Source: Anthoceros angustus (taxonomy: Eukaryota > Plantae > Anthocerotophyta). Taken from it: a stretch of DNA of 64,000 bases. This document shows positions 428-63,149 of the stretch, piece by piece; within the stretch, counting starts at the first letter, position 1, and the number at the start of each line of letters is the position of its first letter. The notes below the pieces were generated by a model. That model was not told where the DNA came from and did no database searches. It was given only the letters and a program-made list of their open reading frames with translations. The DNA is taken from the NCBI GenBank assembly GCA_010909165.1, contig MU008168.1, positions 1,426,001 through 1,490,000 of the forward strand. Reading direction: 5' to 3'. A program made the translations under genes and the position numbers.

Positions 428-1352
428 TAGGGTCCGGCAAACTGCTCCAACGGACCCAGGGCGGACGGGCTCAGGTCCTTCCTTCGGCAAGACTGGTGGA
501 TGAGGGGCCCACCGGAGGGTAGGGCCCACCGGCTCCTGGGGAGCAGTCCAATCCGGGCCGAGGTGAGACCCAGAATCCTGCCGGAAGGCAGGGATTAAGA
601 ATAATTAGGCTAGGCGCCCCTTCAACGCTAGGGTTAGGGATTGGTTTGCCCAGCAGCGGAGTCAGCCGGGGTTAGCAACCCAATCGTCATAGGCGTAGGT
701 AGCCACGCGTGAGGGATCCAGTATCCCTCCCGCGTGTGTAGGTAGCTGGTCGTAGGGCCAGCCCATGGGCTGATTCGTAGGGCCAGCCCATGGGCTAATA
801 AAGGCGCAGCTTTAGAGGCTACATAAGAGGGAGATCGCCGCCCCTGTAATGTGATTTTTCCTTTTGGGGTTGATTCCGCATGGTGTATGAAGTCCTTCTG
901 AACCAAGTGTGAGTGCATTGCCTGAGTCACCATGCCGGCGAACTACCCCGGAGAGGATTATCTTGGCTTTGGTGACGAGCCTTAATGCGTGGTGGTGGTT
1001 GTAGGTGTTGAGGCGCCTCTACCCTTGTTCCTCAAGGGCGAGGGGAAGATGTATGGGAGGTTGTTGCCATTGTAATGTGATTTTCTTTTTGGGGTTGAAA
1101 TATTGCGCATTGTTGCATATTGTCCGTAAGAAGTCTGTCCCCCTCGCCATCGTTCTTGCAGAGTTTGCCACTTTCCCGTTTGACTTGAGGGTCTGTTTCG
1201 TCCAACCAACTTCCTATATTGCCTCTATTCTTTAGAGGAAGCTCAATCCACTCACCCCACCTCCACTCCCCCCTACCTCCTCCTTGCTTTCCAATCCTCT
1301 TAGAAGTTAGCCTCTTTAGGTAGTAAGACTTGCTGGTATGCCCAGCAAGTCT

Positions 1353-1883
1353 GGACATACCTTTATAAGAACGTTGTGATTAAGCATCTTGAACTTAGAT
1401 CGGTACTTAGTTGGGGTGCGTAAAGGGAGTGGATGTCCCTTGTACAAGTAGCTTAAGCACACCATGGTACAACCTGAGCTAAGCTTAGATCGGTACTTAG
1501 TTGGGGTGCCTAAAGGGAGTGGATGCCCTTTGTGCAAATAAGCATCCTGAGCTTAGATCGGAACTTAGTTGGAGTGCCTAAAGGAAGTGGATGCCCTTTG
1601 TGCAAGTAGCTTAAGCACACCATGGTACAAGCTGAGCTTAGATCGGAACTTAGTTGGAGTGCCTAAAGGAAGTGGATGCCCTTTGTGCAAGTAGCTTAAG
1701 CACACCATGGTACAAGCTGAGCTTAGATCGGTACTTAAATGGGGTGCCTAAAGGGAGTGAATCCCCTTTGTGCAAGTAGCTTAGGTACACCATGGTACAA
1801 GTTGTTAAATACCAAATCCCATGACGGAAATTCGTCCTTAGTGGACTTAAATAGAATTCTTCTTCTTCTTCTTCTTCTTCTTC
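1353..1883 (+). mobile_element. Candidate 5S rRNA-derived SINE-like element with an internal tandem expansion (5 units of 68-90 bp) and a (TTC)n tail
   Basis: The head ATAAGAACGTTGTGATTAAGCATCTTGAACTTAGATCGGTACTTAGTTGGGGTG resembles the 5S internal control region. Units starting CTTAGATCGG lie at ~1394, 1484, 1552, 1637 and 1722. The element ends GTGGACTTAAATAGAA(TTC)n. Related copies occur at 29.5-31.1 kb. Confidence 0.7.
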
Positions 1884-2047
1884 CTCCATCTTGAAAGAGA
1901 ACAACTCACATCTTAAAAAAAAAAATTCCATTTACGGAGATAAAATATCTCAATTCGAGATGAACAACCCACCTTTTTAAAAAAATGAAAAACCATTTAC
2001 GGATACAAAATATTTCCATTTCGAAATAAAACTATCCTAAGGAGAGA

Positions 2048-2128
2048 CGTCAACAGCAGGGTTCGAACCTGCGCGGGCGAACCCAACAGATTTCAAGTCT
2101 GTCGCCTTAACCACTCGGCCATATTGAC
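2048..2128 (-). tRNA. tRNA-Ser(UGA)
   Basis: Reverse complement is GTCAATATGGCCGAGTGGTTAAGGCGACAGACTTGAAATCTGTTGGGTTCGCCCGCGCAGGTTCGAACCCTGCTGTTGACG. It has a paired acceptor stem, A and B boxes, anticodon arm ACAGA-CT-TGA-AA-TCTGT and a long variable arm. Confidence 0.95.
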
Positions 2129-2375
2129 GCGGTGATAGAACATTTGCATTTTAATTTTATATTGACTTTTTCTTAGCAATTCCAAATTGCTAGGAAATTC
2201 AGAGCCTTCAGAGTTCACATGTCGAGACTTTCTGCACCCCCTGTATTTGGGGGAGTTGCGAGCTGCCAGCATGAATTGCTGCGGTGGAATTGTTGAGAGC
2301 TGCACCTTTTGTGTTCCAGAGAAGGGTACTTGCATGTAGATACCGTATGTGGTGAGCGGATATTGGGACCGCTCC

Positions 2376-5300
2376 ATGAAGATGGATTTCCCAGATGGAT
2401 CGGAGATGGCCCGTTTCAAATCCGAGGGCCACTCTCCCGGTACCATGTTTCAGGCCACCATAAACAAGCGTAATCTAGGCGAGGTCGGCCGGACGTTCAG
2501 GTACACTCCGTTACCTTCCCATGTTTTTGCAGTGTGCATTCTCACTCTTACATATTGCTGTCTTGCCTTCCAGCACAACGGCATGGTCGATGCGGACCAG
2601 CTTGATCGCATGCGCTTCGGAAACATGTGCAAGGGATCCACGGTAAGAATTTTGTCATGGCCGTCTCCATGAATCACTTTTGAAGGAACCCACCTTCAGT
2701 AGGTTCTCAAACTTTGGTGGCTTGTCTGTTCCTTCCTCTGCCAGCTCAAACGTGCAGCAAGGTTTCTGGATCCCTGTTCATATTCTGTCACCTGAGCGGC
2801 CCACAGAAAATGCAACTATCAACGTTCCTGCTGGTATGGTGTTGTTGATGTGGTTCTTCCATCTGTTGATGTCTCACTGTCCCGAATGAGCAGATGTTGG
2901 AGCAGATAGTTATTTCCCTTTGTGGGCATTGTGTCATGGGGCTGGCTGTTATGCTGTGTTGTGTTTACGATCGACAGTGTTTTGCTGTTTTCTTTGCAGA
3001 TTCACCATTTGACTCAATGCAGTCTCTAGAATGGTCGCCTCCATCCTGTCCAACTGCCCTTCTGGCGGTAAACTGTTGCGGGAAAGCAACCATTTGGACT
3101 CATCCTTCTGAAGTATGGAGAAAATTATTGGATATGCTGTTTCTTGGTCATTGTTTATTTGTCATCTTGCTTGTGTAGTTTGTATTGATGGTGAAGAGGA
3201 ATGCCCAGGACCACTGCAATACGGCTCGTGCTATCAACAGCTGGTCATGTGAGCATGGCTGGCGGCAAGAATACACAGCTGTGACGAAGTGGATAAGCGC
3301 AGGCTCTCCGGTATATGATCATGAACATCCTCTAGAATCTTGATGCAATGCACTTCTTCAGGGCTCCTGGCAAGTCACCAGGGATTTCTTACTTGTGGTT
3401 GGGCCATGCATGTGGTTGTTGTTAATCCATGGTACTTTTCACCCTCTGACCAGTTGCATGTGTGTGTGGTTGGCAGTATCGCTGGGAACCAACAACTGCG
3501 GCATCTAAACCATCATTTGAAGAGAGGTTCATCTCTCAGCAGCCAAGGGCTGCTGGTACATTGTTCACACCTTTCTCGTATACTGTCGACTGCATGTGTA
3601 TCTCAAAGTTGGAGTGCTGTATTAGACTTCATACCTTTCTCGTATTCTGGCGACTGCATGTGTATCTCAAAGTTGGAGTGCTGTATTAGACTTCATACCT
3701 TTCTCTCATACTGTCGACTGCATGTGTATCTCAAAGTTGGAGTGCTGTATTAGACTATCTTAGTGTATTTCTGCTGTACATTAATGGTACTAACTCCTTG
3801 CTGACAAAACGTCTAGGAGGTTAATTACTCTGCCAAGTCTCACCTTCTGACAGCAAGCCTGGTGACTTGGCAGCCAGGTGGCCAAACTTTTTGTGCATCT
3901 GCACTGTGTATACCTCCGGCTGTGTCCAGCTTCACTGGCGTCAAACAGGAATAATCGACAAAATTGGAGGCTCCTCGAAATGGCTTTCCACGAACAAGGG
4001 AGCTTTAGGGGCAGGGCCTAGTGGTGTATGGGCTGCAGATGTGATCATCAACGAAGCAGGAATGCTGTTGGTAGCTGGAGTTCCCATAGGGAATCCCTCT
4101 ACTGTTGTTGTTTGGGAGGTGACTTCCAACAATATGGGTAATCCCACCAGCACTCCACAAGTGGCCTTGAAGTTTGGTTCTGGAGCTCTCTCTCCGGGTA
4201 CCATGTCCAATGGCGTTTCCCCTCTAGCAGCGAGCTTATTGAGCTGGCAGCAGCACGCTGATGTGGATGTAAAACCAGGACAATCTGCTGAAACAAAGCT
4301 TGGACCTTTTCTCCACTGCTCTCCTGTCTCAAATTTGGGTGCCTGTGCCAGGGTGGAGGATTCTATCCCACCGGGCATGACTTCTACAGGTTGGGGCTCA
4401 GGAGTTGCAGCTGTAGTCTTTGACCCCTCCGCTAGGGGCTCTGCTATTATAGCTCTTATTATTGAAGGTGAGTTCCATTTCCACCCTTTTCAACTGATGT
4501 GAAAATTCTGGCCCTCTCCAACTCACTTAATAGCAAATCAACGGGTTTTCGGTCTTGTGTGCTGCACTCTGACGAAGATACACGGCATGGCTGAATCACG
4601 TGTTCACACGTGTGCTGGTTCAAGTCTGAGACTAATTCTGGGGAATTGGTTTCTGCGCAGGATACTATGTGTCACCTAACCATCTGGATGAGGGCCCTTC
4701 ATTAACTGGGTGGAAAATACAACGTTGGGAAAGTTCTTCTCAGCAAGTTACAGTCCACCCACTCCTTGAGTCAAGTAGCTTAAATTATCCGTCAGTTGCT
4801 TATCCCATGAAAACAACTTGGAGGATGACTGAAACAAAAAGCCTCGGTCCCTCAAATGCACAAATGCTACCCTTTGCCAAGGAGCGTGTCTTAGGAGAGA
4901 CCCGTCCTTCAGATTCAAGGGCAGTTGCAAAAGTGCTATTCTCTGGTCATGGTGGAGAAGTAGCTGTTACTTTGGCATCAGGAGATGTACAGGTACTTTC
5001 AGGGCAGAATTTCACCTTGTTGGAGAACTTCAATCTAGGGTCTTGCTACTCTGCTACTTGTCCAGCCTTCTCTCCCAATGGGTGCTGTGTGGCGTATGTC
5101 TGGCACCATGGGAGCCTGTGTTCCAGTATACTTAAAGTGGTGAGAATTCGACCGCTGGTTGCTGTTACTAGTCAAGGAATGTCCAGCTCAATGTCATGGG
5201 AACGGCATCTGGCAGACAGGTTTGTTGTGTGACAACGTATTGACTTGCCTTTCATTATGCTGTTGCGTATGTTGGTTCTTACTATTTTCCTCTTCATGCC

Positions 5301-29449: not shown

Positions 29450-29780
29450 CGGCACACCATGGTATTGTAACACAAGGAATACCAAGGTGTGCCGCACCTA
29501 TGGAACTTGGTAAAGAACTTGTACCAAGGTGTGCCGGACCTCTGGGACTTGGGTAAAGAACTTGTACCATGGTGTGCCTAAGCTACTTGCTCCGAGGGCA
29601 TCCGCTCCCTCTATAGGGACCCCCTGTCATGGGTCTTGGTACTTCAACAACGTGTACCATGGTGTGCCTAAGCTACATGCTCCAAGGGCATCCAATCCCT
29701 CTACTACCCCATGGGACTTGGTACTTTAACACCTTCTACCATGGTGTGCTTAAGCTACTTGTTCCAAGGCCATCCCTTAG
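29450..29780 (-). repeat. Degenerate tandem array of the body of the SINE-like element
   Basis: GTACCATGGTGTGCCTAAGCTAC(T/A)TG and CATGGGACTTGGTACTT are repeated. They are the reverse complement of the 1.4-1.85 kb unit. Confidence 0.85.
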
Positions 29781-30111
29781 GCCAAATGGACTGTGCGGGG
29801 ATGAGAATGAAACAACAAGGGAAACGATTTCTGCAGTGTGAATCAAGCTTCCTATTTGAGAGCAGGAGGACTCTGCAGCAACATCTCAAAAGGGCCATCG
29901 GCGCCTAGGATCCTAGCAGCGCCGTAAGTTTGAAGTAGGGCTAATTTTAGCAAGGGACTTCTGCTACAAATAGTGATCACTGTAATGTGGAGGACACGCA
30001 TTCAGCAATGGACGGGGCTGTGCCCCTTGCTCACTGCGGAGCTTTTAAGCTCCTTGGCTCTACCAGTATTCTAGCTGGGTAGTTCCCCGTACATCTGTGT
30101 CGTGTGTTTGG

Positions 30112-30403: not shown

Positions 30404-30597
30404 TCACTGTGTCCTCTTAGCCGGACCAGCCTATCCAATTCTTTCCTAGCATACAGAGGAGATCATTCATCAGCCGTCTGTCAATCAGTAAGTAAGTCCA
30501 TAGAAGCATCTCTGAATGTGTGAGACAGGCTGCGAGTGAGGGTAAGGGCCCTAGTGCCCAGGTAGGCTGTCACCTCAAAGAGAGGGAGTAGTTGACA

Positions 30598-30760
30598 GGA
30601 CACATTGATAAGAACACCGTTATTAAGCATCTGCGCTTAGATGGGTACTTAGATGGGGTGTCTAAAGGGAGTGATGCCCTTGGTGCAAGTAGCTTAGGCA
30701 CACAATAGTATAGGTTATTAAGTACCAAGTCCCATGACTGGAAAATTCCGTCCAAATGGA
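30598..30760 (+). mobile_element. 5S-derived SINE-like element, monomer without a clear tail
   Basis: GGACACATTGATAAGAACACCGTTATTAAGCATCTGCGCTTAGATGGGTACTTAGATGGGGTGTCTAAAGGGAGT...AAGTACCAAGTCCCATGAC. Confidence 0.75.
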
Positions 30761-30794
30761 CTACACTATATCTCTTCCGAGAGCATCACTCCCG

Positions 30795-30868
30795 GCATCC
30801 CATTTAAGTATCGATCTAAGCGTAGGATGCTTAATACCAGCGTTCTTATAAATGTGCGTATTTGTCCT
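30795..30868 (-). mobile_element. 5S-derived SINE-like element, head-only fragment
   Basis: Reverse complement contains CACATTTATAAGAACGCTGGTATTAAGCATCCTACGCTTAGATCGATACTTAAATGGG. Confidence 0.7.
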
Positions 30869-30875
30869 CCTATGA

Positions 30876-31061
30876 GGAAGAAGAAGAAGAATTTTATTGA
30901 AGTCCACTAAGGATGGGTTTCCGTCATGGGACTTGGTACTTAACAACTGGTACCATGGTGTGCCTACGCTACTTGCACCTCCCTTTAGACACCCCATCAC
31001 CTCATCTAAGTACCGATCCAAGCTCAGGATGCTTAATCACGGCGTTCTTATAAATGTGTCC
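30876..31061 (-). mobile_element. 5S-derived SINE-like element, near-complete monomer with (TTC)n tail
   Basis: Reverse complement reads GGACACATTTATAAGAACGCCGTGATTAAGCATCCTGAGCTTGGATCGGTACTTAGATG...CCCATGACGGAAACCCATCCTTAGTGGACTTCAATAAAATTCTTCTTCTTC. Confidence 0.8.
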
Positions 31062-31140
31062 ATTTGGCCTAGGCCATTTGGGCTGGACAGGTTAGGTGCT
31101 AAACGGGGCGTATGTAAAATAAAAGTGGAAAATCATGTAC

Positions 31141-31213
31141 ATCACGGTGGCGCAGCGGAAGCGTGGTGGGCTCGTAACCCAGCAGGTCCGAGGATCGAAA
31201 TCTGGCTCTGAAA
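31141..31213 (+). pseudogene. Degenerate initiator tRNA-Met-like sequence
   Basis: ATCACGGTGGCGCAGCGGAAGCGTGGTGGGCTCGTAACCCAGCAGGTCCGAGGATCGAAATCTGGCTCTGAAA closely follows plant tRNA-iMet, including the diagnostic GATCGAAA T-loop. The anticodon reads CGT instead of CAT and the acceptor stem is mispaired. Confidence 0.85.
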
Positions 31214-31862
31214 TACCTCATTGTCATTACATTCCGATATCTTGATTTGCCTACACCTGGACTTGAATAAAATTCTTCTTCTTCTATTCACGACGGAGTT
31301 GTGCTTCCTACGTTGATATTCCACTACAGAAGTAGTTGCCTTCTTGACAGCGCTGTTGCATCGGTCATCGATAGCATCCATGGAATGTTGTGTCTGCGAG
31401 TCCTTCCATCTTGCGGATACACGCATGGTTTCCCGTGCCGCACATTCACACACGGCTCGGAAAGATGAGCCGCAACGCCAACTCAACTTGCGTGGGGACA
31501 TGGATTGACAGGAAAGCGGGAGCGCACGACCATCACCGATTGCAATGCCGCACTGCTGCCAACATGGCTGGTCACATAATCCACAGCGTTGTGCGCATTG
31601 TCCCACTTTGACCATTCACAGCCACGACGTTACAAGAAAAGTGTGACTAAATGCACCAATTCCCACAGGACTGGATCTTGTGGCACGGCATTCAAGTAAG
31701 AGAGATCCCATCCCCTTGTCTGTGCATGCGCTTCTACTACTTCAAGGTAGGGCAAGCTTCAGCCTGAGCACCAAGCAATCCGTCGTCGTCCTTGCTCTCT
31801 GAAACATACGCAAAGGCCAGGAAGGATAGATGAGGTTGCTGTCACTGCCAGCGGAGCTCACA

Positions 31863-35723: not shown

Positions 35724-37684
35724 TCAGTGTTGCGCACTCAGCAAGTTCTGACACTGGCTCAAATCCACGTTGCAAATTGTGATGTGTATGTTCACCGAGG
35801 GCGTCTTCCTGTAACTATACTCGACAGGGTCTGCCTCCCAAGTCTGCATCTTCTGGGACCACAGGAAATCTGTAGCACTGTCCTTGGTAGAACATGGGAT
35901 CTGAGTACTGCGACTAGGAAGTGGATCGCGCTCCTGCTGCTGGGGCAGATCTGCAGGCTCCTGTTCTTCATCCTCGTCCTGGCTGTGGCCGTCGTCGTCG
36001 GGCAGATCAAATGTCACCGTCTTATATTTGTGGGACAAGGACAATCTGCTAGTCCGGCAGCCTCTCAGCACACTCTTCGGCTTGGCTGGTGCGACTGCGG
36101 GTTTCTCCCCTTCCAAAACTCTGAGAACAGCTGGTAGATGCAGCATCCTGGCGATGTCGAGCGCAGAAGCTCCCCTCTTCGTCACAGCCTGCTGATCAGC
36201 TCCTCTGCTGACAAGCAAGCGGACAGCGTCCGTCTGCCTCGCTTCCACCGCGCAGTGCAGCGGAGTGTGGCCTTCGTCATCCCTAAGCTCCAGATCTGCT
36301 CCCCAGTCCACTAGAAACTCAGCCAGCGCAACATGGCCCTTGAACGCAGCCCTGTGAAGTGCGCCCCAGCCTCTCCCGTCTTGCCCGTCGATGCTCGCCC
36401 CTCTCTCTAAGCTACGACGAACATCTCCAACATCTCCCCGCCTCGCTGCGTCTCGCAGCTTCTCCCCTAGCTCAAGAAGCTCCAGCAGCTTCACATGCCC
36501 TGCATCCGCTGCCACGTCCGCTGCTGTCATCCCCCGCCGGTCCTGGATCCGGGTGCTGGCCCCGTGCCTCACCAGCAGCTTCACCATCGCCTTGTCATTC
36601 CTCGCCGCTGCCAGATGCAGAGCCGTCTGCCCGCTCCCGGGAATGGCAGCATCCGAGAACGCTCCATTCTCCAGCAGCACTTTCAAGCTCTTCCTCAGCC
36701 CTTCCTCCACCGCAATGTGCACCGCGGTTCTGCCATCTCCGACAGCAGCATCCGCGTTCGCACCTCGATCTAGCAGGATGCGGACCACGTCAAGATGGCC
36801 CCCCACCAGTGCCAGATGCAACGCTGTCTGCCCCCTGGCATCTGCCGCACCGGGATCGGCTCCTTTCGACAGCAGAATCTCCACCATCAGGGGTTCCCCT
36901 GCCAGGGCTGCATCTTGCAAAGGAGTGCGCCCCTCCCGACTCTTCTTCTCAAGGTTCGGTGCGTACTCCAGCAGAAGCTGCACCAGCTCCGGTCTGCCAC
37001 TTGCAACAGCTGCAACATGCACAAATGACTTGGTGAGCCGTATGATTGGCAAGGAATCCGATAGAATTGCAACAGAACGTACATGTCCTTCTGCCTGTCA
37101 GCTGCAGCACGGCTTTCTCCAAACTACTGAATCCAATCAAGAACGACATGGTTCACGATCCCGGAGCACTCACCGACATGCATTGCTGTGCGCTCGAGCT
37201 CGTCCACCCCGTCCACATCCACATCCCTTTCCAGCACAGCTCTGATGTCTTCCATGTCAGACGTTGGTCTCGCCAGCAGCAGCCTCAAAATCCCCGAACC
37301 AACCACCAGGGCCTTCAGCCTGGCGTCCGCAAACACGACTTTGTTCTTGCAATTGAACCATTCCGATGGAGGAATCCGAGGGCCTTCTCTTGCATTTCCT
37401 GGCACAACCACGCTCTTCACCACGAACTTGTCCTTGGTGAAGGGGAAGTGCTCCGGGTACTCGGCCGTAGCCTGCATCACCACCTCCAAATCCGCAGTTC
37501 CAAGGGGCCGAATCACTCCAGTAGGAGGCTTCACGATGTATTTGGTGGGAGCCGTGGTCTGCACCTTGAATGCCACAGACATTGTGTGCATCACATTGCG
37601 GATATGCAACACGCCCGTACATATGCTTCCGAGCTCGAAATGCATCACCAGCTCCTTCGGCTCCACCACCAGCAGCCGATCCAT
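35724..37684 (-). CDS. VPY: VAPYRIN (N-terminal MSP/VAP domain plus ankyrin repeats), 2 exons
   Basis: MDRLL...RNVMHTMSVAFKVQ...YIVKPPTGVIRPL...FPFTKDKFVVKSVVVPG...PSEWF...VFADARLKALVVGS matches the VAPYRIN N-terminus. Many ankyrin motifs follow (GRTPLQDAA, GQTALHLA, GHTPLHCAV). The intron lies at ~37011-37172. A VAPYRIN-like paralogue is not excluded. Confidence 0.85.
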
Positions 37685-38576: not shown

Positions 38577-41500
38577 ATGTGCATCGGCGACTGGTGGGTG
38601 CGTTTTCCATCCTGCCCTTCTGTTCTCCTGTGGGTCATCATGGGTGTCTGGATGGTTGCAATTGAGAATCAAGTCTTCGGAAACAACGAAGTTGTCAGTT
38701 GCACAAGAGTTGCAAAAAATCCTTTCCGTGCACGGAGATACGTTCCTGGAGACGGACATTTCTGTCGGGAACATGGCTTGCTGCTTTCGAGCCCGCAATG
38801 TGTTCGAGACCACACAATTTGGTGGGAATGCTGGCGAAGGAGGAGGTCCAAGCGTTGGCCTGACTTCAGGATCTCCCATGGGGTCCTTCGGCTACACGAT
38901 TCATACATGTCAGCTTGGATGGATGCGGAGCTTGCTGTTCTGGATATGGGTATTGGGAGGGATTGTCGAGCCACCAAATCCAGCTGGAGCTTGACGGGTG
39001 ATCTGTGGGAGAAGGCTGCAACAGCTGAAACCGTGAGCAAGCTATGTGATCAGGGCCATCTGGCCGAGGCTGTTGAGGGTTTGGGGGTTCTGGTGGAGAC
39101 GGACTGTTGTATTTCCAAGTCTGTCTTCTATTCTGTACTGAAGATTTGTATGGGCAAGAGGGATCTTGTTTTGGGTCGCCGCGTGCATGCTTTCACGGTA
39201 AAAAAGGGGTACCAGTCGGACACGTTCCTGTGCAACCACATCCTGCGAATGTACGCTGCTCATGGCAGGTTACAAGACGCGATGGATGTGTTCACTGTGG
39301 TTGCCCAACCAGATGCCTTCATGTGGAGTTCCCTAATTTCTGCGTATTGTAAACACGGGGAAGATAGGGAGGCCATACGACTGTACCATAAGTTGCGCAG
39401 GTCAAGCGTGAAGCCAGATGGTCATACGTTTGTAGCAGCCCTTCAGGCTTGTGCAAGGGGATCAGACTTGAAAACAGGGAAGGAGGTGCATGCAGATGTA
39501 TTGGCCAGTGGGCTTGAGCCTCACTTGTTTGTCTGGAATGGCTTGGTGGACATGTATGCAAAGTGTGGGAGTTTAGAGGATGCACGAATGGTATTTGATG
39601 GAGTTGGTAGCAAAGATGTGGTGACATGGAACGCCATGATAGGAGGGTATTGCCAGCAGGGCATGGGCCATGAAGCCCTTCGTCTCTACAGCACAATGCA
39701 AAACGAAGGCAATGTTGCACCCGACTCCGTGACATTTGTGTGCCTGCTGCAGGCATGTGCAGGTGTCGGCACACGAGCTCTGGAGAAAGGGAAGCACCTT
39801 CATGCGCAAATTAGAGAGCGAGGACATGAAGATGATGTGTTTGTAGCCAACAGTTTGGTCAACATGTATGCCAAGTGTGGCAGCCTAGATGATGCTCAGA
39901 GAGTTTTTGAAGGACTTAGTAAAAAGGATGAGGTCACATGGACTGCTCTCATTGCAGGATATTCCCAGCAGGGCATGGGCCAGGAAGCTCTTCGGCACTA
40001 CAGTGCTATGCAAGAAGAAGGCAGGGCTGTTCCCAATTCTGTGACATATGTGTGCCTCCTGCAAGCATGTGCAAGTGTGGGCACTCCAGCGTTGGAGACA
40101 GGGAAGCAGCTTCATACACAAATTAGAGAAGGAGGATACCAAGCTGACGCGTTTGTAGCTAGCAGTTTATTGCACATGTATGCACAGTGTGGCAGCTTGG
40201 AAGATGCTCAAGGAATATTTGACGGGCTCGTTCAGAAAGATGTGGTGTCGTGGAATTGCATGATAGGACAGTATTCCCTGCACGGTATGGGACAGGAGGC
40301 TCTTCATCTGTACAGTGCTATGCAAGATGACGGCTTGGCTGTACCCAACTCCGTCACATTTTTGTGCCTTCTGCAGGCATGTGCGAGTGTGGGCACCCCA
40401 GCTTTGGAGAAGGGGAAGCAGCTTCACACACAAATTATAGAACAAGGACACCAAGAAGATGTTTATATAGCCACCAGTTTGGTGAACATGTATGCAAAGT
40501 GTGGCAGCTTGGTAGACGCCCGGAGAGTGTTCGACAGACTTGTGCAAAAGGATGTGGTGACGTGGAATGCCATGATAGCAGGGTACTCCCAGCGGGGCAT
40601 GGGCCAAGAAGCCCTTCGCCTCTTCAAGGGTATGCAAGAAGAGGGCATTGCATTATCCGATTCGGTAACAATTCTGTGCCTCCTGCAGGCATGTGCAAGT
40701 GTAGGTAGGCCGGCATTGGAGATGGGCGCGCAGCTTCATACACAAATTAGTGAACAAGGACACCAAGCTGATGTGTTCGTAGCCAGCAGTTTGGTCACCA
40801 TGTATGCAAAGTGTGGCAGCTTGGAAGACGCTCATAGCTTGTTTGATGGACTCGTTCAAAAAGATGTGGTGACCTGGAATGCAATGATAGCAGGGTATTC
40901 TCAGCAGGGTCTGGGGCAGGAAGCCCTTCGTCTCTACAGGGCTATGGAAGAGGAAGGCATGGCTGTCCCCAACTCTGTTACATTTCTGTGCCTCCTCCAG
41001 GCATGTGCAAGTGTGGGCCCTACTGCATTGGAGATGGGAAAGCAGCTCCATACACAAATTAGAGAAGGAGGACACCAAGACGACGTCATTGTAGCCAACA
41101 ATTTGGTAAACATGTATGCCAAGTGTGGCAGCTTGAAAGACGCCCAGAGAGTGTTTGACGGACTTGGTCAGAAAGATGTGGTAACCTGGACTTCCATGAT
41201 AGCCGGGTTTTCCCAGCAGGGCATGGGCCAGGAAGCCCTTCATCTCTACGATTCCATGCAAGAAGGGGGTATGGCCGTACCGAATTCTGTTACATTTGTG
41301 TGTCTCCTCCATGCTTGTGCCAGTGTGGGGACCCCAGCTCTACACAGAGGGAGGCAACTTCATGAGCAAATAATTGAACAAGGACATCAAGCAGATATAT
41401 TTGTAGCCAACAGTTTGGTCAACATGTATGCAAAGTGTGGGAGCATGGAGAAGGCTGCGAGAGTGTTTGATGGACTCGGCCAAAAAGATGTGGTCACGTG

Positions 41501-42413
41501 GACGGCTCTAATTGCAGGGTATTCCCACCAGGGCATGGCCCAGGAAGCCCTTTCTGTCTACTGTGCTATGCAAGATGAAGGCATTGCTGTACCAGATTCC
41601 TTGACATTTGTGTGCCTCCTCGGGGCTTGTGCAAACGTGGGTGCTCTGCATCTGGGAAGGCAGCTACATGCACAGATTGAGGAACAAGGACTTCAGTCTA
41701 ATGTGTTTGTGGCCTGCAGTTTGATCGACATGTATGGACATTCTGGGAGCATGGTTGATGCACAGCAAATCTTTGAGGAATTGCCGGAACGAACCATTGT
41801 TGCCTGGAATGCACTGATTGCTGGATATAGCCGCCAAGGAGACAGTCAAGAGGTCTTCCACCTGACTTTCAGGATGAAAGAGGATGGAATACAGCCAGAT
41901 GCCATCACTTCCCTTTGTGTACTAACGGTGTGTAGTCATAGAGGTCTAGTAAGCAAAGGGCAGGAGTACTTTGACGCTATGGGCAGAGACTATGGCATCG
42001 TCCCCACTGTCGAGCACTATGCATGCATGGTGGACCTCCTGGGCCGTGCAGGCCAACTGGATGAGGCCGTGGCTTTGGTAAGTACGATGCCTGTGCGGCC
42101 TGAGGCTGCAGTCTGGCGCACTTTGTTAGGTGCTTGTCAGAAGTGGAGCAACGTCGAGGTGGGACGCTGTGCTTTTGACCAAGCAGTGAAGGTAGACGAG
42201 ACAGATGCCGCAGCGTATGTGTTGATGTTGAACATATACGCAAGTGCTCAAATGTGGGAGCAAGCACAGAAGATGCAGGCGAGCAAGACAACCATCAGGG
42301 CATGGAAGCAGCCGGGTCAGAGCTGGTGGACAGACATGGACGGCCAAGTGCACAGTTTTCTGGTGGGCGGTACGAAGCATGCATTGAGTGAAGTCAGTGT
42401 GAGTCGGTCTTGA
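38577..42413 (+). CDS. PLS-class PPR protein (1278 aa), E domains with a WW-type box, no deaminase domain
   Basis: Single ORF with regular P-L-S triplets, ending HYACMVDLLGRAG...KQPGQSWWTDMDGQVHSF. The true start may be a downstream Met. Confidence 0.93.
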   Translation: MCIGDWWVRFPSCPSVLLWVIMGVWMVAIENQVFGNNEVVSCTRVAKNPFRARRYVPGDGHFCREHGLLLSSPQCVRDHTIWWECWRRRRSKRWPDFRISHGVLRLHDSYMSAWMDAELAVLDMGIGRDCRATKSSWSLTGDLWEKAATAETVSKLCDQGHLAEAVEGLGVLVETDCCISKSVFYSVLKICMGKRDLVLGRRVHAFTVKKGYQSDTFLCNHILRMYAAHGRLQDAMDVFTVVAQPDAFMWSSLISAYCKHGEDREAIRLYHKLRRSSVKPDGHTFVAALQACARGSDLKTGKEVHADVLASGLEPHLFVWNGLVDMYAKCGSLEDARMVFDGVGSKDVVTWNAMIGGYCQQGMGHEALRLYSTMQNEGNVAPDSVTFVCLLQACAGVGTRALEKGKHLHAQIRERGHEDDVFVANSLVNMYAKCGSLDDAQRVFEGLSKKDEVTWTALIAGYSQQGMGQEALRHYSAMQEEGRAVPNSVTYVCLLQACASVGTPALETGKQLHTQIREGGYQADAFVASSLLHMYAQCGSLEDAQGIFDGLVQKDVVSWNCMIGQYSLHGMGQEALHLYSAMQDDGLAVPNSVTFLCLLQACASVGTPALEKGKQLHTQIIEQGHQEDVYIATSLVNMYAKCGSLVDARRVFDRLVQKDVVTWNAMIAGYSQRGMGQEALRLFKGMQEEGIALSDSVTILCLLQACASVGRPALEMGAQLHTQISEQGHQADVFVASSLVTMYAKCGSLEDAHSLFDGLVQKDVVTWNAMIAGYSQQGLGQEALRLYRAMEEEGMAVPNSVTFLCLLQACASVGPTALEMGKQLHTQIREGGHQDDVIVANNLVNMYAKCGSLKDAQRVFDGLGQKDVVTWTSMIAGFSQQGMGQEALHLYDSMQEGGMAVPNSVTFVCLLHACASVGTPALHRGRQLHEQIIEQGHQADIFVANSLVNMYAKCGSMEKAARVFDGLGQKDVVTWTALIAGYSHQGMAQEALSVYCAMQDEGIAVPDSLTFVCLLGACANVGALHLGRQLHAQIEEQGLQSNVFVACSLIDMYGHSGSMVDAQQIFEELPERTIVAWNALIAGYSRQGDSQEVFHLTFRMKEDGIQPDAITSLCVLTVCSHRGLVSKGQEYFDAMGRDYGIVPTVEHYACMVDLLGRAGQLDEAVALVSTMPVRPEAAVWRTLLGACQKWSNVEVGRCAFDQAVKVDETDAAAYVLMLNIYASAQMWEQAQKMQASKTTIRAWKQPGQSWWTDMDGQVHSFLVGGTKHALSEVSVSRS

Positions 42414-56163: not shown

Positions 56164-59100
56164 CTAGCCGGGGGTTTGCAGACCGGCCTCTACGAGATCC
56201 GCGCTCAGCTTCTTCACGAGGCCATGCAGCAATGCTTCCTGTTGATGCCTGTGGTCTCCGGCCAGGAACGTGTGAACCTGATTCCCATGCTCCATCCAGC
56301 TCTTCCCCGGCTCCTTCCACGCGCCCGCGCTCTGCCTCAGTACTTCGATCTCCTCTGCGGAATCCGGCATGCCGCATTCAGAGTAGATGTTCGACATGAG
56401 CACATAGGCCGCGGCTTCCTTCGGCTCTAGGGTTACAACTCCGTCGAAGGCACGCTTTCCCAGCGCTGCGTTACCATGTTTCCTGCACGCTCCCAACAAG
56501 CACAGCCACACGGCGCCATCTGGTTGCATAGGCATCTGCGAGAGCACTTCTTCTGCTTTGCCAAAGAGGCCGGCACGGCCGACGAGATCGATCACACAAG
56601 CGAAATGCTCCAGCTCCGGAGGAATGCGGTGGTCTCTGGTCATGCTCTCGAAGTATTCCAGTCCCTTGTCCACTAGCCCAGCATGGCTGCATGCGGACAA
56701 CAGCGCCAGGAATGTGACCCCGTTAGGGTTTACAGCTGCAAGGCACATGCGGTCGTAGCACTGCATGCTCATCTCGCAACGTCCTACTCGAGCATATCCA
56801 GCAATCAGAGCAGTCCAGGACACTACGTCCGGCTGGCGGATCGAGTCGAAAACGAGCTGCGCATCTTCCATGCTCCCGCATTTTCCATATGCATGGATAA
56901 GGCTGTTGGCCACTGAGAGACTGTCCTCGAAGCCTTCCACCAACAGACTCTGATGGGCCTGCTTGCATATGGCAAGGGATCCTGCGTTGCTACAGGCTTC
57001 CAGGACACAAAGGAACGTGGCCTCCTCTGGCTTGACACCTTCGGTTTGCATCCGAGAAAAGAGTTGCAAAGCCTTGGCTCCTTGGTGTTGTGCAGCATAA
57101 GCTGCAATCATGGCAGTCCATGCCACCACATCCCGTTGCGGCATGCTGTGAAACACCTGCTCTGCATCCTTTATACTCCCACAGTTTGCGTACATGTTAA
57201 CCAGGGTACTGCCCACAAAAGCATCTGAATCAAAACCCATGCTCGTTACATCAGCATGGAGTTCTCTTCCTTTTTGCAGAGAATCAGCTTTCACACTCTG
57301 TCCATCGATGAGCCTACTTCTCTCCTTTAACCCCACGAGAGCACATGCTTGGAGAGCTCGGACGTAGGTCAGAGCATCTGGCCTGACATCCGTCTCTTGC
57401 ATTCGCCGATAAATCTCCAGACTTTTATGCCCTTGACCGTCTTGGGCGTAAGCAGCAATCATGGCAGTCCATGCCACGACATCACGTGGAGACATCATGT
57501 CGAACACCTTCTGGGCATCCACCAAGCTCCCGCATTTGGCATACATGCTGAGCAGGGTGACACCGACAAACACATCTGACTCGAAACCCATACTTGCAAG
57601 TTCACCATGGATGGCGTTCCCCATGTGCAGTGATTCCTCCTTCACATTCTGGCCATTTACAAGTACAGATTTCTCTGCTTCTGAGACCATGCCACAGGCT
57701 TGAAGAGCGCAGACAAAGGTCCGAGCATCTGGCCGCACTCCTTCTGCTCTCATCTGCCGATAAATCAGTAAGGCTTTTTCTCCTTCCCCGTGCTCAGCAT
57801 ACGCTACCAGCAACGCATTCCATGACACCACAGTACGCTGGGACAATCTATCAAACACTTGCTGTGCATCCCAGATGCATCCACACTTTGCATACATTCT
57901 GACCAGGGTGTTACCGACAAAAACGTCAGACTCCAAACCCCTCAAACTAGCTTCTGAGTGGATCTCTTTCCCCTTCAGCAATGACTCCATGGTGCCTTCC
58001 TGCCTGTTCACAGCCGCTGCACTTTCCTGTTCCGCAAGTGTCCCACACGCTTGGAGGACGCTCACAAAAGTGCGAGCATTTGGCATGACTCCCTCCATCT
58101 GCATTTGCTGATAAATTTGCAAGGCTTCACCTGCTTGGTCCTGCTGGGCATACACTGCGAGCATTGCATTCCACAGCACTATGTTGCGCTGGGACTGCTT
58201 GTAGAAGACTTCTTCAGCATCTGTGATGCTCCCACACTTTCCGTACATACTAACCAAAGTACTACTGAGGAATAAATCTGATTGAAACCCACTCAGAGCT
58301 GCTGCAGCTGCAGCATGCAGTTCCTTCCCCTTCTGCAGCGATCCTACTTTCACGATTCGCCCATCCATGAGCGCACCATCCTCAGTTTCTGCAACTGAAC
58401 CACAGGCCTGCAAAGCACTGACAAAAGTTCGAGCATCAGGCCTGACCCCTGCTTCTTGCATCTGCTCATATACCTGCAATCCTTTTTCTCCTGTTCCCTG
58501 CTGAGCATAAGCTGCAATCATGGCAGTCCATGACACCACATTGCGCTGCAACAACCTTTCAAACACCTGCTGTGCATCCCTGATGCTGCCGCACTTTGTG
58601 TACATACTGACCAGCGTATTCCCAACAAACACATCCGCCTCACAACCTCTTCTTTTAGCATACGAGTGAATTTCCTTCCCTACCCGGAGAGACTCCACCT
58701 TAACATCGCACCCATCTACTATCCTAGTTTCCTCCTGCTCTGCAACAGTGCTACATGCCTGCAGAGCACTGACAAAGGTCCGGACGTTGGGAGTGATGCC
58801 TTCAGCTTGCATTTGCCAGTAGAGATGCAAAGCCCTGTCTCCTCGGTTCTGCTGGGCATAGGCTGCAATCATCGAGTTCCAAGACACCACATCTCGTTCC
58901 GACAATCTATCAAACACCCACTGTGCATCCACAATGCTCCCACACTTTGCATACATGCTGACTAACGTACTCCCAACAAAAACATCAGAGTCAAAACCAC
59001 TCAAAATAGCTGCAGCATGTAGCTCCCTTCCCTTTCTAAGTGAGTCCACCTTAACGTTCTGCTCATCCATAACCTCCTCCTTTTCTGCAGTACTGCTACA

Positions 59101-59871
59101 TGCTTGGAGGGCGCTGACAAAGGTACGTGCATCCGGATCAACGTTCTCCTCTAACATCTGCCCAAAAAGCTGCAAGGCAGCGTCCCCTTTGTCCTTCTGC
59201 GCATATGCAGCAAGCATAGCATTCCATGACACCACATCCCGCTCAGACAATCTCTCGAACACCTGCTGAGCATCCACGATACTTCCACACTTGGCATACA
59301 CACTAATCAGAGTGCTCCCAACAAAGGGGTCAGACTCAAACCCTTCCCTCCGAATGTCAGCATGGATCTGCTTCACCTGCTCCAAGTCTTCCAACTTACA
59401 ACACGCCTTCAGCAACTTGACAAAAGTACGGCAGCTGGGTCTGACACCTTCCTGCTGCATCTGCCCGTAACATGAAAGGGCCTCCCGCCACTGCCCAGAA
59501 TTGCTGTACCCCGAGATGATGGCTGTCCAGGAGAAGGAGCTCCGATAAGCCAGCTTCCCAAACACGCGCAGCCCATGTGACAGGCTTCCACAGTTCACCA
59601 TCGTGGCAACCACCAGGTCACCCAACCTCGACTCCAACCCATGTCTCTCCAAATGTGCGTGTATCTGGATGGCCTCAGCAAGGGCCCTCCTCTTCGTGCA
59701 ATCCTGCAACAGCTGCTTATACCCGTGCAACGACGGCACAATGCTCTCCTGCTTCACATCACCAAAAACCATCGCCTTCCCTAGCTGCCCTTCTTTGCAA
59801 TACCTCTCCACCTCAGAGACCCCCATGGGCATCACCCCTGCCCTGTATAGGGCACCTAGCTCCATTCCCAC
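56164..59871 (-). CDS. PLS-class PPR protein (1235 aa), E/E+ with a PG box, no deaminase domain
   Basis: Single ORF of P-L-S triplets ending HFACVIDLVGRAG...KEPGKSWMEHGNQVHTFLAGDHRH. Confidence 0.93.
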   Translation of the reverse strand: MGMELGALYRAGVMPMGVSEVERYCKEGQLGKAMVFGDVKQESIVPSLHGYKQLLQDCTKRRALAEAIQIHAHLERHGLESRLGDLVVATMVNCGSLSHGLRVFGKLAYRSSFSWTAIISGYSNSGQWREALSCYGQMQQEGVRPSCRTFVKLLKACCKLEDLEQVKQIHADIRREGFESDPFVGSTLISVYAKCGSIVDAQQVFERLSERDVVSWNAMLAAYAQKDKGDAALQLFGQMLEENVDPDARTFVSALQACSSTAEKEEVMDEQNVKVDSLRKGRELHAAAILSGFDSDVFVGSTLVSMYAKCGSIVDAQWVFDRLSERDVVSWNSMIAAYAQQNRGDRALHLYWQMQAEGITPNVRTFVSALQACSTVAEQEETRIVDGCDVKVESLRVGKEIHSYAKRRGCEADVFVGNTLVSMYTKCGSIRDAQQVFERLLQRNVVSWTAMIAAYAQQGTGEKGLQVYEQMQEAGVRPDARTFVSALQACGSVAETEDGALMDGRIVKVGSLQKGKELHAAAAAALSGFQSDLFLSSTLVSMYGKCGSITDAEEVFYKQSQRNIVLWNAMLAVYAQQDQAGEALQIYQQMQMEGVMPNARTFVSVLQACGTLAEQESAAAVNRQEGTMESLLKGKEIHSEASLRGLESDVFVGNTLVRMYAKCGCIWDAQQVFDRLSQRTVVSWNALLVAYAEHGEGEKALLIYRQMRAEGVRPDARTFVCALQACGMVSEAEKSVLVNGQNVKEESLHMGNAIHGELASMGFESDVFVGVTLLSMYAKCGSLVDAQKVFDMMSPRDVVAWTAMIAAYAQDGQGHKSLEIYRRMQETDVRPDALTYVRALQACALVGLKERSRLIDGQSVKADSLQKGRELHADVTSMGFDSDAFVGSTLVNMYANCGSIKDAEQVFHSMPQRDVVAWTAMIAAYAAQHQGAKALQLFSRMQTEGVKPEEATFLCVLEACSNAGSLAICKQAHQSLLVEGFEDSLSVANSLIHAYGKCGSMEDAQLVFDSIRQPDVVSWTALIAGYARVGRCEMSMQCYDRMCLAAVNPNGVTFLALLSACSHAGLVDKGLEYFESMTRDHRIPPELEHFACVIDLVGRAGLFGKAEEVLSQMPMQPDGAVWLCLLGACRKHGNAALGKRAFDGVVTLEPKEAAAYVLMSNIYSECGMPDSAEEIEVLRQSAGAWKEPGKSWMEHGNQVHTFLAGDHRHQQEALLHGLVKKLSADLVEAGLQTPG

Positions 59872-60006: not shown

Positions 60007-61074
60007 ATGAAGGTGTTTCTGACGGGGGGCTCTGGATTCATAGGCAAGGCTCTCCTGAAGTTTCTGATCGGAACCCATGGGGACACGGTGGTCGCTCTGT
60101 CCCGGTCCCCGGCCGCGGACGAGGCGATGCTGGAGGCGGCAGGCAGCGCCGCGGCCAGCAGGGGCGCGCAGGCCTCAGATCACTGCAGCCTGGTGCGAGG
60201 GGATCTGGACTCGGTGGACGCCATGACCGCGGCCATGGCGGAGTGCGAGCTGGTGTACCACGCCGCGGCGTGGGTGAGCTTGCAGGGATCCTGGCAGCAG
60301 TGCTACCACGGCACCGTGCAGGGCACGGCCAACGCGCTGCGGGCCGCCCGGGCCGCCAAGGTGCCGACCTTCCTCCACATCTCCTCCTTCACCGTCATGT
60401 TCAGCCAGGATGCGGCAGACATGAAGGGCGCCACGGAGGAGAACCCCAAGCGAGTGCCGGACTGGGCTTTGTACGCGCGCTCCAAGGCCATGGCGGAGGA
60501 CCTGGTGGTGGAAGCGGGCAGGGACGGAAACGGGGAATCGGAGCTCAGGACGGTGTCGGTGCGGCCGGGGTTCGTGTGGGGGCCCGGGGACACCTCCGTC
60601 ATCCCCATTCTGCGAGACAGCATCGGGGCCGGGACCTTCAGATGGATCAAGCCGGACGACACCGAGACCGTCACCACCTTCATCGACAATCTCTGCTACG
60701 GGCTGCGGCTCGCCGCGCTGCGAGGCAGGAGCGGGGAGGTTTACAACATGTTTGACAGAGAGAGTCCCGTTCGAGTCCGGGAGTTCTTCACCAAGTATGT
60801 GCGGGCCGGGTTGCCTGGTGTGAAGCTGCCGTCGTCGGAGGTGTCCGGGAAGGTGCTCTGGGCTCTGGCTACGGTTCTGGAGAACATTCCTGTTGTGAAT
60901 CAGGTGGCCAAGCGGTACATCTCCAGGCAGATGCTGCTGCCTCTGGCCTGCTCCTTGACCAGTTACAGCACCAAGGCGCAGACGGAGCTCGGGTACGAGC
61001 CTCCTGTGTCTTTTGAGGACGGCATGTCTAAGACTGCGGAATGGACTAACAGGCAGCTCCTCGTCTCTGTCTGA
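60007..61074 (+). CDS. Extended SDR: NAD-dependent epimerase/dehydratase (3-beta-HSD-like), intronless
   Basis: TGGSGFIG Rossmann motif, VYHAAA, HISS, catalytic YARSK and VRPGFVWGPGD. Confidence 0.9.
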   Translation: MKVFLTGGSGFIGKALLKFLIGTHGDTVVALSRSPAADEAMLEAAGSAAASRGAQASDHCSLVRGDLDSVDAMTAAMAECELVYHAAAWVSLQGSWQQCYHGTVQGTANALRAARAAKVPTFLHISSFTVMFSQDAADMKGATEENPKRVPDWALYARSKAMAEDLVVEAGRDGNGESELRTVSVRPGFVWGPGDTSVIPILRDSIGAGTFRWIKPDDTETVTTFIDNLCYGLRLAALRGRSGEVYNMFDRESPVRVREFFTKYVRAGLPGVKLPSSEVSGKVLWALATVLENIPVVNQVAKRYISRQMLLPLACSLTSYSTKAQTELGYEPPVSFEDGMSKTAEWTNRQLLVSV

Positions 61075-62454
61075 TGAAAGCAGCGCCACTTTTCGGTGCC
61101 GTAGGCTGGCTACTGTGAATCTAGAAGCCTCCTTGGCTGTCTGCTGCTGTGACATGGGTGCTGTCCTCGTCTCTGGCCCGGCACTGGGTTGTTGCTGACA
61201 GTACAATCAAAGGTCGGTCTCGTCATCAGTCACACAGCAGCAGCAACGAAGCATTCATGCTGTCGGAACAACAGCATGCCACTCTAGAGGATCCCTTTGC
61301 GAGACCAGTTCTTCCACATCCCATTGATGTGCCTCGGACCTGCTGTAACAGGCAGTGCTCTCCCATGAACACCCTGACTGCTCTAGTTTAGGGTCAGCAT
61401 TTTCCATCTCAGGCAGGCCTAGATTCTGTAGTTAACCTGCTTTTAGGGTCTGATGAGCAAATGAGTTACCTTGGAAAGCTTGCCTGCAGGGAGAAGATCC
61501 ATCCCCGATGAATGCGATGTGCATCCACGCCTTTGCTGAGCTGGCTGTCAAAGCTTATGTGAGCATCTTCCAGGCTCTTACATTCTGCATAACATATTCA
61601 CCACTGCAGGGTACTGCAGATGACAGCATCGAATTCGAAACGGTCCCAAGCTCTCTGAGAAGCTGCTTTTTCACCTTCAAAGCTACCAGACACTAGCGCA
61701 TGCTTGGCCCCGGCAGGGGGCACCTTAGCTCAGTTCAAGTAGGTAGATGGATGGGGATGAAAGCCACTCATCTAGGCACTCATTTGGCAAAGAGCTAAAA
61801 GTCTGCGGTATACAAAAATATGTTGTAAAATTTTAATTAAACATCTACATAAAGGTCAGATACCCTTAAGTAAATACTTCAGAGTATCCGACCTTTTTTC
61901 TAATGACGAAGTGTACAGATGTCTTCAAAATCGTAGAGGGTAACCTAGCTCATAAACCCTCTAGATAAAACATATGAGAATCTTGTACTAATGACCACAT
62001 TACAGCTCCAAGAAGCTTTTCATGTTTTGTGTTTACTACTGACGCGGTTTCCCTTGTCACATGCTTCTGAGTCATAAAGTAGGGGGTGCACGGTCCTGGA
62101 GATTAACAGAGAGAAATTGACTTATTTGTTTAGATTAGCGAGTGCAAGTGGGACTTGTTCACCTGCTATCAGGATTCACTTTGCAGTTATGCTAAGAGTT
62201 ACCCAATATTGCAGTTTAGGAGTGTCCTCTATATATCTTAAGTTTTACAAGGCATTCTGCCTAGTTCGCCCGTATTAACTTTAGTTCGCTGAGATTTAGT
62301 CAGCATTATGATTTAGGAGTGTCTTTGGATCCCTTGATTTTACGAGCTATTATACGAACTCGAACTAGCGGGAAAGTTTCGACCGACAGGCGGAGGGGTG
62401 CGCGGACGAGTGTCCTTTCCTTTTCTTACCACCGGAAGGCAGTGGAGGTGTGTG

Positions 62455-62592
62455 ATAGCGTTAAAGATACAGCGATAAAGATGTAGTGTTAAAGATACAA
62501 CGTTAAAGATATAGTACTAAAGATATAAGGGTAAAAATATAGTGCAAAGATATAGCGCTAAAGATATAGAGTTAAAGATATAGCGCTAAAAA
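62455..62592. repeat. Degenerate short-period minisatellite built on TAAAGATA(T/C)AG
   Basis: About ten imperfect TAAAGATATAGCG-like units. Confidence 0.8.
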
Positions 62593-63149
62593 ATAATTAT
62601 ATAACTATAACACCAAGGGAAAAGGAATGAAGCTTATCTAACAAGAGCTATAGCGGAAGCTAACCTATTAAGGGCTATGACAGAAAAGGAAGAAACTTAA
62701 TATTTAATATGATGATGGTGTAATCACATATGTCAAAAGAATTCTCAGATGCCCATCGTCCTCCGTGTGTAGTCTCTCGAAACTGCCAAGTATCCATGGT
62801 CCCCACGTATTGCAGGAATATCCAGTCTCACTATTGGATATTTCCTCAATACGTGTGGACCGCGGATGTAGGGTACGAGCAACACTATACAAGCAGCAAT
62901 GCTGCTTGTACCCTACTGTGGCGCGACTTTCACTGATGGCCAGCCGGGCGCGCACAATCCCGTGTCGTTGTAGGAAGAAGTCCGTTCCCAAGGGAATGAT
63001 AGGCTCCGTTTACCGCGTTTCAGGTGATTCCTACCGCCCTTAGCGCCTGCTCACCAACACACATACTCCTAACTACTCACAACGTTTCACCGACAGCCCT
63101 TGTGATGGCTAAACGCTTAAGGACCTGCTCGTCCGTATCGTTCACATCC

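Follow-up and report, generated by a model that had tools for sequence, protein, structure and literature searches.

A dispersed repeat with a 5S rRNA-like head in a hornwort genome: a probable SINE3 variant that shares its 3′ end with a tRNA-derived SINE

The window analyzed here, i.e., the whole stretch of 64 kb of Anthoceros angustus DNA, contains a non-coding repeat of ~212 nt, which is present in five pieces and in both orientations. We hold with high confidence that this repeat is a SINE. It is probably best explained as a SINE that has an internal promoter of the 5S type and has borrowed its tail from a LINE, which would make it a SINE3 variant in plants. The repeat has the anatomy of a SINE and is abundant, its head resembles plant 5S rRNA above the chance level, the promoter boxes keep the 5S geometry, and the tail is common to a tRNA-derived SINE in the same window.

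Pieces of the 5S-like SINE were found at all three loci named in the first-pass annotation (1353–1883, 29450–29780, and 30598–31061), the last of which holds copies D, B, and C. The pieces and their parts are as follows:

30877–31088, minus strand: copy C, full-length 5S-like SINE, the sole clean complete copy
31088–31052, minus strand: leader of copy C, 37 nt
31051 to ~30990, minus strand: block of copy C like the 5S internal control region (ICR), starting with ATAAGAACGCCGTGATTAAGC
~30989 to 30906, minus strand: body of copy C
30905–30892, minus strand: 3′ motif of copy C, GGACTTCAATAAAA
30891–30877, minus strand: tail of copy C, (TTC)5
~30780–30868, minus strand: copy B, partial leader and 5S-like head only, 3′-truncated (nhmmer 3.9 bits, 5S positions 36–93)
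~30580–30770, plus strand: copy D, degenerate leader, 5S-like head, and body, without the AATAAA/(TTC)n tail
~1322–1883, plus strand: copy A, 5S-like SINE with an expanded body
1328–1354, plus strand: 11-bp hairpin in the leader variant of copy A
from 1366, plus strand: 5S-like head of copy A
1381–1811, plus strand: five tandem units of ~85 nt in copy A (repeat families D7 and D9)
1843–1856, plus strand: GGACTTAAATAGAA of copy A, after the small 3′ stem-loop
up to ~1883, plus strand: tail of copy A, (TTC)9
29450–29795, minus strand: array of 4–5 body units without head and without tail (repeat families D13 and I9–I25)

The head is present in four copies (A–D), and their 5′ ends lie at the same place; directly past the 5′ end of copy C the sequence is unique. 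Copy C carries a private 8-nt insertion inside the C-box region of its 5S-like block. Its (TTC)n tail is abutted by copy B, the two minus-strand copies being joined tail to leader without an internal domain. The head of copy D (30608–30668) corresponds to 5S positions 37–98, and copies D and B are arranged tail to tail. The repeat had originally been described as ~190 bp long; the repeat itself was recovered, but its length was corrected to ~212 nt, since the family continues 32–37 nt in the 5′ direction from ATAAGAAC. Similarly, the repeat occurs at all three loci, but 29450–29780 is not a whole element as had been assumed: the segment 29450–29795 is made of tandem units that stem from the SINE body and does not represent a retroposed copy. 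At the left end of this array (29455–29500), a segment starting with GGCACACCATGGTA is inverted and duplicated into a perfect-looking hairpin, and the units there shorten to ~45 nt.

For the comparison with 5S rRNA, real plant genes from metagenome contigs, validated with RF00001 (up to 115.7 bits), served as the reference. Ungapped, the window consensus matched plant 5S at 34/51 and 41/64 positions, the first of which reproduces the count given in the first-pass annotation. The 5S stretch used there agrees with the fetched genes except at 5S position 49, given as C; the gene of L063 has A at this position, whereas C is seen in some others of the fetched set. The 5S-like SINE carries neither letter, which leaves a mismatch either way. 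A plant 5S profile built from 16 genes (alignment A1) was run with nhmmer (--max) against both strands of the whole window. The consensus scored 14.2 bits, and none of 5,000 shuffles reached this value, their maximum being 8.5 bits. The top three matches in the window were the heads of D (7.4 bits, E 0.15), C (7.3 bits, E 0.17), and B (3.9 bits), all on the sense strand; the next, unrelated match had 2.2 bits. The single copies are marginal in this search, having E-values of 0.15–1.9.

Pairwise alignment yielded a similar picture. The score of the consensus was reached by 0/10,000 shuffles under +1/−1 scoring and by 11/10,000 under +5/−4 scoring. Under +2/−3 scoring, a scheme unsuited to 65% identity, 740/10,000 shuffles reached it, which is not significant. 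For local alignments of single copies, the numbers among 2,000 dinucleotide shuffles were 4 for C, 4 for D, 72 for B, and 451 for A, and all of these copies aligned in one register, from 5S position 37 to 87–90. The similarity amounts to ~65% identity over ~60 nt and covers only 5S positions 37 to ~100, i.e., the ICR; positions 1–36 are unrecognizable in the 5S-like SINE. These comparisons support the view that the head is closer to the 5S ICR than either shuffles or the remainder of the window are. Very many repeats were compared overall, and some chance resemblance at this level is to be expected somewhere.

Structure-aware models behaved differently: the nhmmer score of the consensus head exceeded the shuffles, but Infernal with RF00001 did not detect the heads. 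At E ≤ 10, the heads went unreported in pieces of 771, 601, 111, and 131 nt, where Rfam E-values count 4,227 families and are therefore strict. A plant 5S covariance model (R1; 16 genes, Rfam structure, filters off) ranked only random hairpins and no heads, and the predicted RNA folds of copies C and A were no more stable than those of shuffles (z −0.4). This implies that no 5S fold has been kept and that the similarity is linear only. As judged from the letters alone, the resemblance to 5S is real but modest and confined to the linear ICR. When the whole window was searched with Rfam at gathering thresholds, only a tRNA-Ser(TGA) gene was reported (2046–2129, minus strand, 63.6 bits); the tail of copy A lies 163 nt away, on the 3′ side of the gene. 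In the reference material, two metagenome plant contigs (L075:1429–1547 and L013:279–397) contained diverged 5S-like copies with 86% identity to canonical plant 5S, in which ATAAGAAC replaces ATCAGAAC, as it does in the SINE head. These copies may represent pseudogenized 5S genes or the 5S core of Cassandra LTRs.

The failure of the structure-aware models, the limited identity with its non-significant result under +2/−3 scoring, and the very large number of comparisons made speak for a rival reading, in which the repeat is a true LINE-dependent SINE with a head not derived from 5S. The promoter would then be a decayed tRNA type or another one, and the likeness to 5S would come from chance or convergence. 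This reading draws further support from the leader, where T(A/G)GC(T/C)TAGG at +8 to +18 fits the first eight positions of a tRNA A box, and from the tRNA origin of almost all plant SINEs described so far (PMC3531059, PMC10946416). However, the combined A and B boxes scored 13/18 in copy C (p ~0.06) and 9/18 in copy A (p ~1), which is not above shuffles, whereas both controls passed, with 15/18 for the neighboring tRNA-derived SINE and 18/18 for the tRNA-Ser gene. ARAGORN and Rfam found no tRNA in the heads, although the Rfam tRNA model does detect the neighboring tRNA-derived SINE. A tRNA-type promoter (SINE2) is not supported for the 5S-like SINE on these two grounds, non-significant A and B boxes and no tRNA model match on the heads. 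Moreover, a SINE needs some internal Pol III promoter, and the profile score of the consensus, the ranking of the heads as the top three in the window, their orientation, the box spacing, and the distance to the 5′ end all fit 5S. We therefore regard a head of non-5S origin as unlikely, yet deserving of serious attention.

The promoter geometry provides an argument that does not depend on any alignment score. TTAAGC and GATGGG are offset by 30 nt in both the 5S-like SINE and 5S, confirming the exact box spacing claimed in the first-pass annotation. In the 5S gene, ATCAGAAC begins at position 37, with 36 nt before it, and TTAAGC lies at 52. The leader in front of ATAAGAAC is 37 nt long in copy C and 32 nt in the family majority, which puts TTAAGC at +48 to +53 in the 5S-like SINE compared with +52 in 5S; here, the position of the 5′ end is taken from a single clean copy together with a loose-end consensus. 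A retroposed Pol III transcript starts at a site set by the promoter, so the type-1 reading predicts the length of the leader, and the observed lengths agree with this prediction. The leader length thus fits a type-1 promoter. Two points count against a 5S-type promoter: plant 5S genes reportedly depend on upstream motifs as well, which the SINE cannot carry, and the sense strand of the 5S-like SINE lacks a run of four T's at which Pol III could stop.

In sequence, the majority leader proves to be a diverged version of the body segment GTGCAAGTAGCTTAGGCACACCATGGTACAAGTT, its score being reached by only 5/3,000 shuffles. For the own leader of copy C, the score against the same segment is reached by 139/3,000 shuffles, and for copy A, with its hairpin leader, no match to the segment was seen. 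Together with the 85-nt tandem units, the repeat shared by leader and body indicates that the body duplicates readily.

The 5S-like SINE ends in GGACTTnAATAnAA followed by (TTC)n, where n is 5 for copy C and 9 for copy A, and past (TTC)n the copies are unrelated (loose contig ends before 30877, agreement 0.39). In the family consensus, a small 3′ stem-loop GACGGAAATCCGTC stands immediately before CTTAGTGGACTT (majority letters at 30914 and 30917). The motif GGACTTnAATAnAATTCTTC occurs three times in the window, where 0.03 occurrences are expected by chance, which bears out the conserved 3′ end with (TTC)n described earlier. Two of these occurrences are on the 5S-like SINE and one is on a separate, low-copy tRNA-derived SINE:

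31141–31285, plus strand: tRNA-derived SINE (RF00005, 22.4 bits, E 0.048)
31141–31213, plus strand: tRNA-like head of this SINE, with A box TGGCGCAGCGG and B box GGATCGAAATC

The box score of this second SINE, 15/18, was reached by 2/2,000 shuffles. Its 3′ end is TGGACTTGAATAAAA(TTC)4, and over its final 28 nt it is identical to the end of copy C at 27/28 positions. It lies 50 bases from copy C. Four SINE pieces fall within 700 nt in this region, and the low depth in its head bins in DNA run X1 reflects a low-copy head. Two types of head on one 3′ end are what would be expected if the tail was borrowed from a single LINE. Within the 64-kb window, no LINE with this tail was found; all three tails there belong to SINEs. 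When the surroundings of copies A and C and of the tRNA-derived SINE were searched for direct repeats, only low-complexity or within-element matches came up, and the copies at 30.6–31.3 kb are nested or abutting. As in the earlier analysis, no convincing target-site duplication was seen around copies A and C.

To describe the family beyond the window, the contigs of X1, the DNA run that contains this locus, were aligned to 900 nt of the window at a likeness of at least 80%. This yielded 1,999 contig pieces, of which 160 had at least 99% likeness, 561 had 95–99%, and 909 had 90–95%, showing that copies exist outside the window. The summed word depth in X1 was 20,000–106,000 inside the 5S-like SINE and 12–15 in the unique flanks; this depth is not a copy number and is read only as a sign of a high-copy family with many little-diverged copies. 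The consensus head given in the first-pass annotation proved to be the family majority in X1 (30643 G>C, 30661 T>C, 31002 T>C, 31019 C>T). The leader is conserved for ~26 nt in the 5′ direction from ACATTT (42 contigs, agreement 0.59), and the depth is single-copy by 31101. This 5′ extension of the family is based on the loose ends behind 31059 and on the depth bin 31070–31100. In run X2, from the same sample and RNA only by guess, the 5S-like SINE appeared only inside contigs of 1.7–6.5 kb. A 23-mer of the 5S-like SINE had no match in bacterial or archaeal genomes or in viral contigs, and a plant 5S pattern had none in viral contigs. Logan contigs of a related plant (SRR33208241/2, ~65 kb) and 24 kb of an ENA contig contained no copy, which is uninformative on presence or absence, as these contigs break at repeats.

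The depth profile also bears on whether the repeat is a SINE at all. In X1, the bins of body and tail are 3–4 times deeper than those of the head, as might be seen if the repeat were the 3′ end of a 5′-truncated LINE, or a tailed satellite or minisatellite spreading by recombination, without a promoter of its own. The tandem body arrays in copy A and at 29450–29795, the leader made from a body segment, and the fact that no target-site duplication was found around copies A and C point in the same direction. Against this, the head occurs in four copies with a common 5′ end, and unique sequence follows directly past that of copy C. The copies are dispersed and in both orientations, the length of (TTC)n varies between them, and there is no long open reading frame. 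The tail is also found on the tRNA-derived SINE, which is what a LINE-derived tail would lead one to expect. Taken together, these observations make a LINE fragment or a satellite a decidedly improbable source of the repeat.

The repeat could instead be an LTR, either solo or paired, of a Cassandra-like TRIM, such TRIMs being the known plant route for a mobile 5S promoter. What Cassandra LTRs have in common is no more than a ~70-bp core of the 5S control region; Cassandra is also able to build tandem arrays and occurs in ferns and angiosperms. The 5S-like SINE, however, begins with GTCC.. rather than TG.. and ends in AATAAAA and a variable (TTC)n rather than in ..CA. None of its copies has a tRNA-Met primer-binding site beside it, and the one near match in the window, at 8953, is far away and at chance level. 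The adjacent direct copies C and B likewise lack the internal domain that paired LTRs would flank. The paired TG...CA LTRs with primer-binding site and polypurine tract named in the first-pass annotation as a competing outcome were thus not found, and we judge an LTR origin to be very improbable. A MITE, named there as well, was rejected: the ends share only GTCCA/TGGAC (5 nt), and the microsatellite that forms the 3′ end varies in length.

With these alternatives weighed, the preferred reading, in which a SINE combines an internal promoter of 5S type with a LINE-borrowed tail, can be given as a model. The element consists of a leader of 32–37 nt, a 5S-like block, a body, and a 3′ end. The leader varies by subfamily and, in the main subfamily, is a diverged copy of a segment of the element's own body. 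The block of ~60 nt, similar to plant 5S from 37 to ~100, corresponds to the ICR and carries, at 5S spacing, the TTAAGC core of box A, the AGA of the intermediate element, and the GTACT..GATGGG of box C; it would descend from a 5S gene. The body of ~85 nt is unrelated to 5S and prone to tandem duplication, and the 3′ end comprises the small stem-loop, GGACTTnAATAAAA, and (TTC)n of variable length. TFIIIA and TFIIIC would bind the 5S-like block, and RNA polymerase III would start ~50 nt upstream of box A, at the first base of the 5S-like SINE, producing a transcript that extends through the tail. The reverse transcriptase would come from a LINE that ends in this stem-loop and (TTC)n as well; the enzyme would recognize the 3′ end and copy the RNA into new sites. 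Of the Pol III type-1 retroposon proposed in the first-pass annotation, the SINE architecture, the likeness to the ICR, the orientation, and the distance to the 5′ end stood, but a match to the whole 5S or to its fold did not.

The window holds several other features. An intron-less open reading frame at 60007–61071 (plus strand) encodes a 355-aa protein similar to NAD-dependent epimerases/dehydratases. Its only close relatives are a transcript of the hornwort Nothoceros aenigmaticus (64%) and two Logan contigs of a related plant (58%); the remaining matches are bacterial or metagenomic (31–40%). Bacteria are a possible source of the frame, which may have entered this plant lineage by horizontal transfer. 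Two very long, intron-less PPR genes lie at 38577–42413 (plus strand, 1,278 aa) and 56164–59871 (minus strand, 1,235 aa), with internal periodicities of 312 and 351 nt. The matches of the former carry PPR, E-motif, and DYW deaminase domains, and the best matches of the two genes, to a lycophyte, are only ~46% identical. The presence of large PPR-DYW genes is in keeping with a hornwort. A 441-aa open reading frame of ankyrin repeats is found at 35724–37049 on the minus strand (Ank_2, E 8e-53). Among the short repeats, 3564–3756 consists of three tandem copies of a 64-nt unit with 95% identity (family D12), and 62449–62604 is a 14-nt minisatellite, AAAGATAyAGyGyT, of ~11 units (family D8).

Garcia et al. 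2024 (PMC10946416) state that plants have no known SINE of 5S origin, and they list Cassandra alone; in the later literature, we found no report of a 5S-derived SINE in plants. Kojima 2024 (PMC10886601) describes SINE3 families that keep the boxes while the upstream part diverges. The 5S cores of Ajax and Cassandra are a precedent for a promoter-only 5S module (PMC10886601, PMC10853983). The insertion of a SINE3 into a TRIM LTR has been proposed as the origin of Cassandra (Kalendar 2008, as cited in PMC10886601).

In this context, a SINE with a 5S promoter and many copies in a seed-free plant would fill a gap in the range of plant SINEs, and it would make the proposed route from SINE3 to Cassandra plausible in plants. 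It would also be a compact natural test piece for the requirements of a plant type-1 Pol III promoter. The window itself brings together two SINE families with different promoter types and one LINE-type tail, and the conversion of a SINE body into tandem arrays represents a route from a retroposon to a satellite. A broader reading combines three statements: the 5S-like SINE would be the living, free 5S-promoter retroposon required by the model of Cassandra origin; 5S-driven SINEs would formerly have been present in land plants and would survive in hornworts; and one (TTC)n-tailed LINE would mobilize both a type-1 (5S-like) and a type-2 (tRNA) SINE in hornworts. We consider this joint reading speculative and, as a whole, rather improbable.

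The comparison with known systems places the 5S-like SINE between several of them. With the plant tRNA-derived SINEs (Au-like, RTE-related short retroposons, PMC6007223), it shares the SINE layout and the short microsatellite tail; the target-site duplications of those SINEs are weak or lacking, and none was found here around copies A and C. Unlike these SINEs, it has a head without a tRNA match and without significant A and B boxes. Similarly to Cassandra of vascular plants and Ajax of nemerteans, it is non-autonomous and has only the 5S promoter core (box A, intermediate element, box C; ~70 bp); in Cassandra and Ajax, the sequence between the boxes is free to vary. Both of these are LTR elements with a primer-binding site, a polypurine tract, TG..CA ends, and 5-bp target-site duplications, whereas the 5S-like SINE has a LINE-type tail and none of those LTR features. 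Classical SINE3 heads span the whole 5S, unlike the 5S-like SINE, in which only 5S 37 to ~100 is recognizable. It also differs from the SINE3 of animals and fungi in its land-plant host, its (TTC)n tail, and its leader copied from its own body. Nevertheless, it has in common with them a head similar to the 5S ICR, an unrelated body, and a LINE-type 3′ end with a simple-repeat tail. It is short, non-coding, and high-copy, as are zebrafish SINE3, AmnSINE1, OS-SINE1, MEG-RS, the insect HaSE3, and the 5S-related SINEs of Aspergillus, and, as in the lepidopteran SINE3 (PMC10886601), the promoter boxes have been kept while the upstream part has diverged.
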